Source: Paraphysomonas bandaiensis (taxonomy: Eukaryota > Protista > Chrysophyceae). Taken from it: a stretch of 64,000 nt of DNA. Where the stretch lies: assembly GCA_965644295.1 (NCBI GenBank), contig CBFFRP010000378.1, forward strand, positions 434,001 to 498,000, given 5' to 3'. Each line of letters opens with the position of its first letter. Position 1 is the first letter of the stretch. Below the pieces are notes generated by a model, which saw nothing but the letters and a program-made list of their open reading frames with translations, was not told the origin of the DNA and did no database searches. A program made the translations under genes and the position numbers. Positions 11,921 through 24,118 of this stretch are shown in pieces.

Positions 11921-12479
11921 CCACCCATTAATGGGCCATTAATGGTAATGCCATTATAATTGCCGGGACATTTTTAATTAAAAGGCCATTATAATTGCGG
12001 GAAACTGGACTACCATTAATGACCTGTACTGCTATATATAGAACTGAGTGTTCTTAAGAGTATAGTATCTCCTCTGTACTCCGAAGAAACTCTAAAGAGT
12101 ATTAGACAACAATGTTCATGCAACTCTACAGGCACTCTGTGGCAACTTTGTTCATTATCTTCTTAATGCATTCTAGAGTTGGAGAATAGTGTCCTGATCA
12201 ATATCCACAGCAACGCAGGAATATACCCAAAAACTCTAAAATAATCATTGAAAATATGCATATTTCACCTAAAAACATTCATAAAAACACTATTTTTCCC
12301 CAAAGTTGAAAGAAGTTGCAGTACACAAACTCTCCTGCATTTCTACCATCCCACATCCAGCTTATGAAGCGACGATGAATTGATGGCAGTGTAATTTACA
12401 GAGTCTTCTTCCGAGTGGTTTCAGAGAATCTTCTCAGTGGTCTGTATCTTATTGTTCGTTGTGCAATGATCTCCTTTAA

Positions 12480-13050
12480 CAAGATATACAGCGAGGTTAT
12501 GCGAGTTGTGTGAATCATACAGCCAAGAAGGGCACCAAACATGCGGATTTTTCTTGGCGAGAGAAACTCGAGAGAATTTTGGGATGTGAAAGACTTCATG
12601 GGGGCGATTTATTGTCCTTTTTGTAAGAAAGAAAGTATCTCCTGCTTCAAGGAACTTATATCAGTGACTGGAATGGATAGCTCTGAACGACGAACCATTT
12701 CCTATCGTGGAGAATAAGTATGTTCGGAAGAACACCAATTTAGCACCCATCTCAGTGAAGACGGTGATGAAATATTTACAACTCACAAATATACTCGTGG
12801 AAAGGAAGTTGAGTATATGTGTGCGTTGTAAATATTTCATCACCGTCTTCAAGGAAGCTGGGGTTACTCGAGTGTTACTATGCTGCGGACCTCAAGAGCA
12901 ACCGGACGAAAACAATTTACCGTGTATTGATTTTACTGCGGCTGATATCGGAGATTATGTCATTAGTCAACTGCAATTATTCAATAAAACTCTTGCCAAT
13001 GTCGATTGTCTTGTGTGTGATAACTGTGCAGCAACTTACCAGGCCCTGCA
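12480..13050 (+). pseudogene. hAT-type transposase pseudogene fragment
   Basis: WIALNDEPFPIVENKYVRKNTNLAPISVKTVMKYL and LLCCGP...DFTAADIGDYVISQLQLFNKTLANVDCLVCDNCA resemble stramenopile hAT transposases (the DN in VCDNC is the catalytic-type motif). It carries stops and deletions. Confidence 0.7.
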
Positions 13051-19400: not shown

Positions 19401-20615
19401 AACCAACACACGGATCAGTACACTTTTCACCTTCTCAAGCCGATTATCCATGTTCTCCACTAGCACTGATATCCCTGATATTCAACCGACAATGACATCT
19501 TATTCTCGCATGATATGTATACACACCTCCAGACGTGCAGAAATTACTGAGCCAGTCTTCATTCGAGTGCTCTATGCGGTACTTGCACGTAAGAAGTCGA
19601 ATAGAGTCTATTGACCTCTCCGAGTCCATTATAGTTACCATTTCTTCATCTTCCTTCGAAAAATGGGGATGGTCGTCTAGGACACTGTACAAATTGTTAT
19701 GGAGAAATACTACACAATGCTATTCATTTACCATAGTGATCGCTGTACATGCTGAAACCTCTCCATAGGAGTGTAACTACTGCTTAGGGATTCACGGAGC
19801 GATTCAGTCACCTGTAGCTTTCGCAAGAGTTCCGCGAAGTAACCGTCAATCTCTTGCAACACGTCCGGATCAATCGGTTTCGGTTTCGGGTTTGCTTCGG
19901 AGTCAAACTCCTGCTTCTTCTTTTTTGCTTTTGCTTTAGCATCATTGTACTTATTGAGCTCTTTCTGATACTCCTCGAACATGCCCTCAATTGATTTGAG
20001 CCGAAGCAGCAGAGTTCGCTTCGGTTTTGGAGGATACGTTGCTGCCAGTGCAGAGACGAGCTCTTCTTTGTTCTTAAGAACCGTATAATCAATATTCTTC
20101 AACGTGCAAAAGTACTGCAGGTCCTCGATCTTGAAGCTGCTCAACAGAGTATGATCGGGAGGAGGCTGGGGACGATCTTTCTTGGGGAGTGGTAAGGTCG
20201 TGAGCTCCTTCCCTTTCGATCCGCTCTTATTTTCAGTACCAGTCACAGATTCAGTCGACAACTGCTTTGGTTCAGCATTTAAATCATTTGACTTTTCTTT
20301 GTCGGATGTCTGTACACCCTCCATGTCTGCATATGCAGTTGTGGGCATCTCTTGTGTATCACTCTTCATACCAGACAGAGTCTCAACAGACATATCTTGA
20401 GGGGACTCTTCCTTGCCATCATCTTGATTCATCTTAGTCTCATCACACTCTACCCCTTCAGATCCTTCTTCTTTACCAGATCCAGCAATTAACTGTATAG
20501 AAATGAATATATATTTATATAAACTATAAAATCAAATATATCTTACATTATTAATTTTTCTAGCCATTTTCGTCAAGCGAAACTTTCTTGGTTTTGATTT
20601 AGCTTCGTCTGACAT
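13469..20615 (-). CDS. Formin (GBD/FH3 - PH - coiled coil - FH1 - FH2), many small exons
   Basis: ATG at 20615 (MSDEAKSKPRKF). GBD-like HSNEDWLSNFCTSGG. PH-like RWYQLVDGVFSWY...EKWVVALN at ~17570-18170. Pro/Gly-rich FH1 at ~15850-16400. FH2 motifs PKKKMKGLFWTKL, ISLFDGKRTQ, NGGTSRGQAHGMKLDAL and SLMHFVV. TGA at 13469. Confidence 0.92.
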
Positions 20616-20996
20616 GGTAGTAAGATTAGTTACGTCTATTAGTAGAGGATATCCAGGTTATGCATGTAATGTGAATATTCGAGCTACCATAACACACAAT
20701 CTCGTTCGATCTTTTGTTTTTTTGTTGTATCATTGTACATACATACTACGACTTGTATGTATGTATATCCGTGTGTTTTCAGGTAATTCCACTAGTAAAA
20801 TTATCAACCGTACAGTCCGTCTACATATTGTATATTTTTCTGCTATCCGTATTCCTCAACTGAAATATCCCTCATATGGGATAAAATACTTCTTAAAGTG
20901 ATTGATATCTCGTTAGAACTCTTCACGAATTCGCCTTCACCAAGAAACAGACTCCTTTAACTATCTTTTCACATTATTTCTATTGCATCCCTTGAG
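20616..20996. promoter_or_regulatory. Probable bidirectional promoter between the formin and NAA80-ACTMAP genes
   Basis: 381 bp separates two divergent ATGs. Inferred from geometry only. Confidence 0.5.
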
Positions 20997-22385
20997 ATGC
21001 CATTGCAATTAGTGGACTGTAAGAGTGTATCAGATGATGTGTTGTATGATGCAGCCGAGTTGTTGTCATCTTATTGGACAGGATCGATTGCTACAAGAAA
21101 ACATCAGATGCTAAGCAACACTGGAAGTTATGTATTTGTTAAGGAGGATAATAACGACAATCATCCCCAACAAAAGGGAATAGGTCATGTAAAAGTTATA
21201 CCATACAGTGCAACTGGTGATGATGCATTCGGTCCTTGTCTCTGTGGAGTAGTAACATCCGTTATCATTGCAGAGGAATATCGTGGTCAAGGTTATGGAT
21301 ATCGTCTTATGCAGATGTTAGAGGATGTGGCCATCAACCTTGGCTATTGCTTCCTGTACTTGTGGACCAGTGACGCTGTCGAGTTTTATTTGAAAGTTGG
21401 CTATCGCAGATGTGAAAGGGTTCACGAAGCTGTGTCTGCTTTGAAATCAATGAGTTCAACCTCCATATCTAAGTTGGAAAGTATGATATCCAATAAGGCA
21501 GCCGTGGTACTTGATTTGGATGGTGCGGGTGGCACTATGTCCACTGTGTACATGAAGAAACGTATCAGAGATGAGGTTCCGCTGGAACCCTGGACTATAA
21601 GCGAGTTGAGAGCCCAATTAGTCGACGATATTTCTCCGTTAGTAAAGAAAGACAACCTATTTGTTGATGTAAATATAAATCATGTTCCATGGGGGAGACA
21701 AGTTGGACCGTCTTGTGGTATACAAGCGCTTCGAATGACAGCAGCTTATCTTAATCGTTCAACTTTATCGCCAAGTAAGTCCCTTCTACAAGAGGCTATC
21801 GATAAAGGATACAGTTCAGAGGGTGAAATATTTGATATCAATCATATATCAGCACTTGCTGTCTCCATTCACCTGTCTGCTAGGGTATGTCCACTCTCTG
21901 TACTAGGTTTTAATGGGATCCGTGATTTGCTCTCCACCTCTCCAAAGTCAGTTATAATATTACCATACGACAAAGGCCCGTCTTGTGAGCCATGCACTGA
22001 GGGTGGACGGCGCGCACACTATGCAGTGATATGCGGTGCAGCATGTCGGTACTCTGCTGATGTAGTCGGATGTAGTCGCGATGAACGTGTTCGTGTGATT
22101 ATAGATAGTGATAATGCCATCCAGGACTGGCCACATGATAATTCAACCGAACAATCGAACGAATTCTTAATTGCGCTACAAGGGCTGTCAAAGCGCCCCA
22201 TTATTGCATCGTATTCACAATGGAAAGAGTCTAATGCACAGCTTTTTGACAATTCTCTTTGCAAAGACAGTTCTACAATTGATGATAGAGGTAAATTGGC
22301 TAGGCAAAACATAGCGAACAGCAAGTGGATGATTCCTACTGCGGGGCCTAACCTTTCAGGAATGTGTGTTATTGTGTCTTCATAA
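20997..22385 (+). CDS. Fusion of NAA80-like GNAT actin N-terminal acetyltransferase and ACTMAP (C19orf54)-like actin maturation cysteine protease
   Basis: Single 462-aa ORF. N-half: DAAELLSSYW..S.ATR, IGHVKV, VTSVIIAEEYRGQGYGYRLM, LYLWTSDAVEFYLKVGY, TVYMKKRI. C-half: QVGPSCG.QALRM, LLQEAIDKGYSSEGEIF, ILPYD...EPC..GG.RAHYAVI.G, LQGLSK, KESNAQL, NLSGMCVIV. Confidence 0.85.
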   Translation: MPLQLVDCKSVSDDVLYDAAELLSSYWTGSIATRKHQMLSNTGSYVFVKEDNNDNHPQQKGIGHVKVIPYSATGDDAFGPCLCGVVTSVIIAEEYRGQGYGYRLMQMLEDVAINLGYCFLYLWTSDAVEFYLKVGYRRCERVHEAVSALKSMSSTSISKLESMISNKAAVVLDLDGAGGTMSTVYMKKRIRDEVPLEPWTISELRAQLVDDISPLVKKDNLFVDVNINHVPWGRQVGPSCGIQALRMTAAYLNRSTLSPSKSLLQEAIDKGYSSEGEIFDINHISALAVSIHLSARVCPLSVLGFNGIRDLLSTSPKSVIILPYDKGPSCEPCTEGGRRAHYAVICGAACRYSADVVGCSRDERVRVIIDSDNAIQDWPHDNSTEQSNEFLIALQGLSKRPIIASYSQWKESNAQLFDNSLCKDSSTIDDRGKLARQNIANSKWMIPTAGPNLSGMCVIVSS

Positions 22386-23136
22386 ATTTTAATCCAATAT
22401 AGCGATTAGTATTCATTATACTCTTCTCTGCAGTACATATGTACGTACTGGCATACTGGAGTGTCGGGCCGAAAACTATCGAAAATTGAATATTATATTC
22501 TCAACTTTACGAAGAATTACTATGGGCACAGATATAGAAGTAATTTATGTGTTCATTTTATACGGATGAATATTAAATAAAGAACTATTACTATATTTCT
22601 AAAGGTAGTACCACTGGTAGCTTTGTTCTTTGTATATTGTAGAATCATTTTGCCGAATATTTTACTTTCCACTCTTATAACATAACACTCTTAGAATACG
22701 GGAAGAATTTTTTTATACTGAATATACACTACACAACTAGCAGAATAATATGCTCCATAACATCATAACATATTGTCAGTGGGACTACAAACAAAACACT
22801 CAAGAGGAATGAGAAGGTTAGCACGTATTATTACACACCAATGTATTTAAAAGACTAAGATTGGGTATGTTTCGCAAACATGTGACTTGTAAGTATACTC
22901 GAATGAGACGGGAAATATTATTCAACCTAGTCAAATTGGTTGAATTACCTAATCACACTATTTTTGGTGGAATAACCTAGTCAAAGTAATAAATGATTCA
23001 ACCTAGTCATTTTTTTTAAATAATAAGGATCTCTTGTAAATTATGTCACAAGCTCACAACAACACGTTGCCTAATAGTCACACAGATAAGACGATTCCTA
23101 ACTATATAATCCACTTGCATCTCTGTGTTTATCATC

Positions 23137-24118
23137 TCAAGCGGAGGAAGATGCAATGTCGGCGATGTTGCTTTTGTTCGACGCGATGCGCCTCTCCAAG
23201 TACTCCTTTCTGCCCTCCAAGTCCCTCTGGGTCTTGCTGAGCTTCTCACTCTCTTTCTGCAGGAAGGTTTCAATCGAGTCCCTGGGCTCGCGGAGGAATG
23301 CCTTGCCTACTGTGCGGTATAGGGGAGTTTCAGCGTCATACGTGTCAATCTGCTGTTTAGTCACAAGATTGGAACGGAGATCACGCTGGCAGGAGGCAAG
23401 GGACCCCTGCACACCGCGGAGATCGCGAGCATAATTTGAGGTCTGCTCCTGGAGCTCCATCAACTGTTCACATATTCAGTGCACACATAAGTTGGGAAAA
23501 CATTTAAGAAAAATTTCAAATCAATAAAATCTACGAACCTCACGGCGCTGGGACTCATCCAGCTGTCTTGGGGCACGAGCCTTCTGCTTCGTAAGGGCTG
23601 CCTTTTTAGCCCGTACCACACGGAGCTGCTTCTGCAACTGCTCGTTTTCTATTGCACATCCACACCAGCATAATGATAAGGGTAGACTAGGAATTTATGT
23701 ACGGCACCTGAATCTATTCTGAGGGCCTCCTGAAGAACTTTCTGGGCATCGTCGAAATTGCCCAGCTCGGTGTGGGCAACAGCGAGACGGTAATATCCCT
23801 TAACAAAAGATGGGTTCTTACTGATACACGTGGATGCATCTTGAATAGCAGCATCCCATGCTTTCAAAGAAGAGTGACAAGCACTGCATTATCCATCAGT
23901 GATAGCCACGACTAATAGAGTAATAACAAACCTTCTATTCGAATAATAAATAGCATTTTCTGGGTCACAAGAAATAGCATTAGAATAGTGGCCGATAGCT
24001 TCTTCATAATTTTTGGAAGCAAATGCTTCATTTCCTAGTCTATTAATAGGGTTAGTTATATATATTACAGTCATTAACAGTTATGTGATACATACTTCTT
24101 GTGATCCTCTGCTGACAT
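23137..24118 (-). CDS. STI1/HOP-type TPR domain fused to beta-type prefoldin subunit (PFDN1-like), 5 exons
   Basis: Splices as MSAEDHK-LGNEAFASKNYEEAI..YYSNRSAC..KGYYRLA..DSENEQLQKQL..QRRE/LMELQ..LYRTVGKAFL..KEYLERRI. The two GT-AG junctions linking TPR to prefoldin (~23707 and ~23538) keep the frame. Confidence 0.85.

Follow-up and report, generated by a model that had tools for sequence, protein, structure and literature searches.

A fused NAA80-like acetyltransferase and ACTMAP-like protease in the chrysophyte Paraphysomonas bandaiensis: a probable single-chain actin maturation enzyme with relatives across protists

Can the two enzymes that complete the N-terminus of animal actin, NAA80 and ACTMAP, exist as a single protein? 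The question is raised by a gene in a 64,000-nucleotide stretch of the genome of P. bandaiensis (GenBank assembly GCA_965644295.1, contig CBFFRP010000378.1, forward-strand positions 434,001 to 498,000). This whole stretch is hereafter called the window, and all coordinates follow its numbering. The gene encodes an acetyltransferase domain of the GNAT family followed by a cysteine protease domain, and a first-pass annotation made from the sequence alone had read the 2 halves as counterparts of NAA80 and ACTMAP, joined in one polypeptide that matures actin. In animal class II actins the small residue next to the initiator Met is acetylated once Met has been removed, ACTMAP cleaves this residue off, and NAA80 acetylates the Asp or Glu thus exposed (PMC11735805, PMC13557074). 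We put at roughly 70% the probability that the fusion protein is a bifunctional enzyme performing both of these last steps on actin, a reading that draws on comparisons of sequence and predicted structure.

The fusion gene is expressed as one mRNA, with no sign of a split transcript. It is a complete, uninterrupted open reading frame (ORF) of 462 residues with an ATG start and no intron, and it lies exactly where it was first described, at 20997–22385 of the plus strand. An in-frame TAA (20958–20960) stands 12 codons 5′ of the ATG, and no upstream ATG occurs within the 5′ untranslated region (UTR). Three runs from one organism (X1–X3) are RNA-derived assemblies—i.e. the introns of neighboring genes are absent and intergenic DNA is uncovered—and in each of the 3 a single unspliced contig covers the ORF (X1 20926–22582, X2 20924–22567, and X3 20947–22564). 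The poly(A) signal at 22572 matches the 3′ ends of these contigs (22564–22582), which cannot prove transcript ends and come from runs that are perhaps not fully independent. Neighboring introns of 47, 54, and 75 nucleotides have been spliced out in the same assemblies, and the fusion gene is intronless. The transcript contigs differ from the window by substitutions only, 5 of them inside the ORF (3 synonymous, R361H, and C422S), and the DNA run X9 covers the gene without a break. The claim of one polypeptide from one transcript thus stands, as do the motifs named for it: the acetyl-CoA loop R96-G-Q-G-Y-G101, G237-P-S-C240-G, and A340-H341-Y-A-V. The gene is both the sole NAA80-like locus and the sole locus with a PF21646 domain, the Pfam family of ACTMAP, in the 62.6-Mb genome.

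By sequence and predicted structure, no other N-terminal acetyltransferase (NAT) or GNAT is as close to the GNAT half as NAA80. Pfam GNAT models match residues 44–137 (E about 2e-9), and the solved structures that best match the sequence on its own are those of NAA80 from human (6nas) and fly (5wjd). A profile built from 22 GNAT halves of the family and run against the Protein Data Bank (PDB) sharpens this result: fly NAA80 is matched at 2.7e-21 (79 bits) and human NAA80 at 8.1e-20 (74 bits), while the next solved GNAT follows at 4.8e-8 (36 bits) and NAA50 at 1.1e-7, which leaves a 40-bit gap. The AlphaFold2 (AF2) model of the whole protein is confident, with a predicted local distance difference test score (pLDDT) of 83.3 and a predicted template modeling score of 0.81, and a Foldseek search of the PDB with this model returns NAA80 entries in all of the top 5 places. 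In the ESM Atlas the nearest named clusters are arthropod GNATs, one of them labeled "N-alpha-acetyltransferase 80". Identity between the GNAT half and NAA80 is only about 20%. The NAA80 motifs named in the first-pass annotation (ACADLINDQWPRS; LTT....FY...GY) show up in HMMER alignments with the human enzyme.

A phylogeny of the GNAT domains agrees with these searches. Word-indexed profile searches with each half retrieved almost only further members of the fusion family, and animal NAA80 and ACTMAP were not reached by them. An exhaustive HMMER search with the GNAT half recovered 649 representatives at E ≤ 1e-10, of which 127 also pass E ≤ 1e-30. Among the best 150 matches, one is a confirmed animal NAA80: a 220-residue millipede protein (P0205) that the family GNAT profile matches at 1.9e-27 and that itself matches NAA80 structures only (7e-29 and 4e-28). 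In the maximum-likelihood tree, which holds this single animal sequence, animal NAA80 and all fusion GNATs form a clade against generic GNATs with a support of 100/100, and the animal sequence branches first. The P. bandaiensis protein joins environmental sequences in this tree, and then the chrysophyte Pedospumella. The placement of the GNAT half with NAA80 rather than with generic GNATs, as had been proposed, therefore holds in profile, structure, and tree.

The active site of this half is intact. A catalytically dead mutant of human NAA80 carries changes at W105, R170, G173, and Y205 (PMC7141826), and these align to W27, R96, G99, and Y131 of the fusion protein, where all 4 residues are kept. 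Among the family members that cover each position, they are conserved in 144 of 145 (W27), 154 of 168 (R96), 158 of 168 (G99), and 175 of 175 (Y131). In the fly enzyme, contacts with the acidic actin peptide are made by N33, W36, R38, R43, S46, S88, S124, and T125, with R43 forming a salt bridge to the second acidic residue of the peptide (PMC5924903). Of these, W36, R43, S88, and T125 correspond to W27, R34, S88, and T124 in the window protein, and are kept. Across the family alignment, residues 34 and 88 define 2 pocket types: an animal-like R34/S88 type, to which the window protein belongs, and a diatom-like type with Tyr at the first position and Tyr or Phe at the second. This split may track differences in the actin N-terminus.

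The C-terminal half belongs to the ACTMAP family, as the annotation had suggested. Pfam model PF21646 (ACTMAP-like_C) matches residues 234–348 with E = 4.3e-22 and 79 bits against a cut-off of 27, covering 116 of the 121 profile positions; like the GNAT matches of the first half, it lies far outside what chance would give. This profile and the shape comparison below lend indirect support to the human ACTMAP motifs that the annotation had listed. By ESM Atlas features, the nearest stand-alone clusters are chordate proteins labeled "actin maturation protease" (0.97 and 0.96), followed by bacterial PF21646 proteins (0.95). Folded separately, the domain reaches a pLDDT of 82, and its best match by shape is a chordate cluster named "UPF0692 protein C19orf54 homolog", with a template modeling (TM) score of 0.75 over 210 residues, compared with 0.69 for a bacterial cluster. 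Solved structures that resemble this half are papain-like (Alr0975, C39 peptidases, and staphopain); a search of the PDB by sequence with the profile of the protease half detected no solved structure, and hence no ACTMAP structure. The protease half is thus closer to animal ACTMAP than to bacterial PF21646 and C39-like proteins, by modest margins in both Atlas features and shape.

Here too the active site is intact. The putative catalytic residues Q235 and C240 are present in 178 of 178 covered family members, H341 in 164 of 164, and N413 in 155 of 157. The nucleophile of human ACTMAP is C132 (PMC13367750), and C240 would be its counterpart, judging from motif and profile rather than from a direct alignment.

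The fusion is real, under selection, and not confined to P. bandaiensis. Both domains are found in at least 178 of 213 retrieved relatives, always in the order GNAT then protease and with a median length of 496 residues, and overall identity among the 178 two-domain members is 26–46%. Several of the single-domain representatives sit in clusters with full-length members of about 480 residues, so many of them are fragments. Named carriers include diatoms (Cylindrotheca and a metagenome-assembled genome of Bacillariaceae), the thraustochytrid Hondaea, the chrysophyte Pedospumella, a dinoflagellate, the apicomplexan Besnoitia besnoiti (756 residues, both domains recognized by Pfam), and the diplonemid Flectonema. 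The architecture is seen in transcriptomes (MMETSP and EukProt) and genomes of many lineages. Automatic database labels describe these proteins as either "Actin maturation protease" or "GNAT family acetyltransferase".

Three relatives depart from the common layout. P0128, a 786-residue metagenome protein from ENA, carries an Exo_endo_phos domain (PF03372, residues 8–244) in front of its NAA80-like and ACTMAP-like halves; it is a genuine triple fusion unless gene models were merged. In P0078 (557 residues), the ACTMAP-like protease is preceded by a weak PDZ_6 match (25.8 bits, against a 27-bit cut-off) and there is no GNAT; it may represent an alternative pairing of the protease with a partner domain. 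P0097 (347 residues), from the EukProt transcriptome of the choanoflagellate Helgoeca nana, has a GNAT only, nested in the clade of diatom-type fusion GNATs, and is possibly a contamination rather than a choanoflagellate gene.

Both conventional actin genes of the genome encode MADDDVQALVV, a class II-like start in which a small residue precedes an acidic run. Conventional actin of this genome is identical to an MMETSP1103 transcript (taxon id 36769, Paraphysomonas); actin being highly conserved, this match would fit a close relative of Paraphysomonas as well. These 2 genes are intron-free, one residue apart in sequence, and in opposite orientation on one contig with about 28 kb between them; beside one of them lies a further stretch, partial and actin-like, that contains stop codons. 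In the rhizarian Paulinella, another member of SAR (stramenopiles, alveolates, and rhizarians), mass spectrometry detected an actin acetylated at Glu3, from which the authors inferred NatH in Cercozoa (PMC9237673). An NAA80 orthologue has also been reported in Dictyostelium (Amoebozoa), which shares animal processing (PMC5924898). Because of the MADDD layout, the Paulinella acetylation, and the Dictyostelium enzyme, the fusion most likely carries out both maturation steps. A complex prediction of the fusion protein with its own actin gives a score of 0.57 (median of 3 runs) against 0.00 for the best control, which the prediction tool rates as weak support; at least 81% of contacts are common to the runs and partner pLDDT is at least 75. 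Of 78 solved complexes, 51 reach the mark used for such scores, as do 2 of 108 mismatched pairs; scores no higher than 0.60 belong to just 5 of the 78 and to every one of the 4 mismatches that passed.

Since the actin reads Met-Ala-Asp-Asp-Asp, we infer actin as the substrate and the following order of steps. The initiator Met would be removed by a methionine aminopeptidase, and Ala2 would then be acetylated by NatA. The C-terminal ACTMAP-type protease (Gln235/Cys240/His341/Asn413) would cut off Ac-Ala and expose Asp3, and this acidic end would in turn be acetylated by the N-terminal NAA80-type GNAT (Trp27, Arg96-x-x-Gly99-x-Gly101, and Tyr131) with acetyl-CoA. Hand-over of the substrate between the 2 domains, or channeling, which had also been raised, is speculation.

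Several observations weigh against this reading. The pocket for residue 1 is unlike that of animal NAA80, with an invariant W123 in place of fly S124 or human Thr; the arginine of the WPR motif (fly R38) is deleted in the subgroup of the window protein; and about 40% of the family, of the diatom type, has Tyr replacing the anchoring Arg. The insert at residues 140–183, which sits where human NAA80 carries its Pro-rich profilin-binding loop, has no proline. Fly NAA80 is also compact, so the Pro-rich loop may not define the whole NAA80 family, and profilin is encoded in the same genome. Plant actins likewise start with Met-Ala-acidic though plants are not known to have either enzyme, and the actin sequence is therefore permissive rather than diagnostic. 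The weak-band score of the fusion–actin complex may reflect the memory of the model for the solved NAA80–actin complex. On the protease side, PF21646 has bacterial members too (Atlas clusters from Verrucomicrobiota and Myxococcota), so the Pfam match alone is no proof of ACTMAP orthology, and for the same reason the eukaryotic ACTMAP-like protease may have a bacterial C39-like origin.

The partly kept pocket (W123 for Ser/Thr, the missing R38, and the R/S as opposed to Y/Y,F types), the missing profilin-binding loop, and the weak-band complex score would all fit a protein whose 2 domains act in tandem on targets other than, or wider than, actin, such as other acidic N-termini. We regard this as an unlikely alternative, given that NAA80 and ACTMAP of animals are both described as dedicated to actin (PMC5924903, PMC7141826, PMC11735805), that among the abundant proteins of this organism actin stands out as the one whose start has a small residue and then an acidic run, and that the controls of the complex prediction scored 0.00. 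Fusions also sometimes keep an inactive domain as an adaptor, and one half could accordingly be enzymatically dead and retained as a binding or regulatory module, leaving the protein effectively monofunctional. This is improbable: both domains have confident predicted folds, and their catalytic residues are invariant or nearly so over 178 members that are only 26–46% identical overall. Least probable by far, to the point of being negligible, is an artefact in which 2 adjacent genes are read through or wrongly assembled, and this reading, for which no supporting observation was found, is rejected by the single stop-free ORF, the contiguous transcript in 3 RNA-derived assemblies and contiguous DNA run, and the 178 two-domain relatives, whose shared architecture comes from transcriptomes and genomes alike. 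Maturation of actin by both domains of the fusion protein is thus the reading that we prefer.

The features of the gene and protein are listed in Table 1. The nearest neighbors of the fusion gene are minus-strand genes at 19600–20656 and 22976–23600, and these contain the 47-, 54-, and 75-nucleotide introns (GT..AG, read as CT..AC joints on the plus strand). Between the fusion gene and the next gene lies a short element of very high copy number (22908–23014), where the DNA run reaches a depth of about 12,000–13,000, against about 97 in the flanks. At the borders of this element many contigs break off or diverge. Identity of this element as a tRNA was ruled out.

Table 1. Positions of the fusion gene, its domains, and selected codons in the window
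Feature	Position	Strand	Basis or correspondence
5′UTR	20924..20996	+	About 70 nucleotides, bounded by transcript contigs; contains TAA 20958–20960
Complete intron-free coding sequence of the 462-residue fusion protein, stop codon included	20997..22385	+	
NAA80-like GNAT domain, residues 1–196	20997..21584	+	Pfam, profile against PDB, Foldseek, tree
W27 codon	21075..21077	+	Human W105, fly W36 (orients substrate peptide)
R34 codon	21096..21098	+	Fly R43; R in 73 family members, Y in 57
Acetyl-CoA loop, residues 96–101	21282..21299	+	R96 = human R170, G99 = human G173
Y131 codon	21387..21389	+	Human NAA80 Y205
Variable, partly low-confidence insert, residues 140–183, with conserved block L160-E161	21414..21545	+	Before last GNAT beta-strand
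Last GNAT beta-strand, residues 184–189 (VYMKKR), K188 and R189 near-invariant	21546..21563	+	
Helical connector between domains, residues 197–225 (helix 201–217)	21585..21671	+	AF2 model
ACTMAP-like papain-fold cysteine protease domain, residues 226–462	21672..22382	+	Pfam, Atlas, shape
Q235 codon, putative oxyanion-hole Gln	21699..21701	+	Q in all covered members
C240 codon, putative catalytic nucleophile within GPSCG	21714..21716	+	C in all covered members
H341 codon, putative catalytic His	22017..22019	+	H in all covered members
N413 codon within SNxQL motif, putative third catalytic residue	22233..22235	+	N in nearly all covered members
3′UTR with poly(A) signal at 22572	22386..22582	+	Transcript contigs

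Both enzymes and the pathway are already known; the novelty lies in their union in a single chain and in how widely this architecture occurs among protists. No description of the fusion came up in full-text literature searches on it and on NAA80 or ACTMAP in protists; these did not cover the supplement of Drazic 2018 or Haahr 2022, the Science paper that reportedly identified ACTMAP. Recent reviews still call the pathway animal-specific (PMC11735805, PMC13557074). The first-pass annotation had likewise presented the gene as extending an animal pathway well beyond animals: the extension is supported by the fusion in protists, and the premise of an animal-only pathway had already been softened by the Dictyostelium and Paulinella reports (PMC5924898, PMC9237673).

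Our results suggest that animal-type actin maturation is widespread among protists. The fusion provides independent genomic evidence that ACTMAP and NAA80 form one functional unit, and it predicts two-step actin maturation across a large part of eukaryotes—i.e. in diatoms, chrysophytes, thraustochytrids, dinoflagellates, at least one apicomplexan, and diplonemids. More tentatively, and with the balance somewhat against it, the NAA80–ACTMAP fusion could be the usual form of actin maturation across SAR and Discoba, with animal-type removal and re-acetylation being ancient and perhaps going back to the last eukaryotic common ancestor. If this is true, the two-gene system of animals and amoebozoans would be either a product of fission or the unfused ancestral state, and apicomplexans such as Besnoitia would control actin maturation through a single gene. 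A natural single-chain enzyme would also be a convenient reagent for fully matured recombinant actin, and a system for studying substrate hand-over between 2 active sites.

Compared with known systems, the GNAT half most resembles NAA80/NatH (human NAT6, Drosophila CG8481), by far its best sequence and structure match among solved GNATs. The 2 share the GNAT fold, the catalytic W, RxxGxG, and Y, the LxxxW motif of alpha1–alpha2, the Arg that anchors acidic residue 2 of the peptide, and an insertion directly before the last beta-strand. By contrast, the fusion GNAT is covalently joined to a protease, lacks the 77-residue N-terminal extension of human NAA80, and has an insert that is not proline-rich and holds no canonical profilin-binding site; the position that touches residue 1 of the substrate is Trp instead of Ser/Thr, and the subgroup of the window protein has no "PR" after the catalytic Trp. 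The protease half resembles ACTMAP/C19orf54 (UPF0692) in its PF21646 match above the curated threshold, in having chordate clusters as its best matches by both Atlas features and shape, and in its Cys nucleophile, here within a papain-like fold with Gln/Cys/His/Asn. Unlike animal ACTMAP, a cytosolic enzyme of about 45 kDa that stands alone, the protease described here makes up the C-terminal half of a longer polypeptide.

The closest bacterial parallel comes from a survey of the papain superfamily, which describes DUF3335-GNAT fusions (PMC10318531); some bacterial relatives, too, carry both a C39-like peptidase and a domain of the GNAT type. These fusions and the bacterial PF21646/C39-like proteins fall in the same papain-like cluster as the protease half, and bacterial PF21646 clusters are its second-best matches. 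The DUF3335-GNAT fusions differ, however, in that they are prokaryotic, have GNAT partners that are not NAA80-like, and have proposed roles as peptide ligases or acetylases. The protein from P. bandaiensis is a Rosetta-stone fusion, encoded by one ORF and one mRNA and conserved across lineages, of parts that are separate genes in animals, and unlike in the bacterial systems both of its halves match eukaryotic actin-specific enzymes best.

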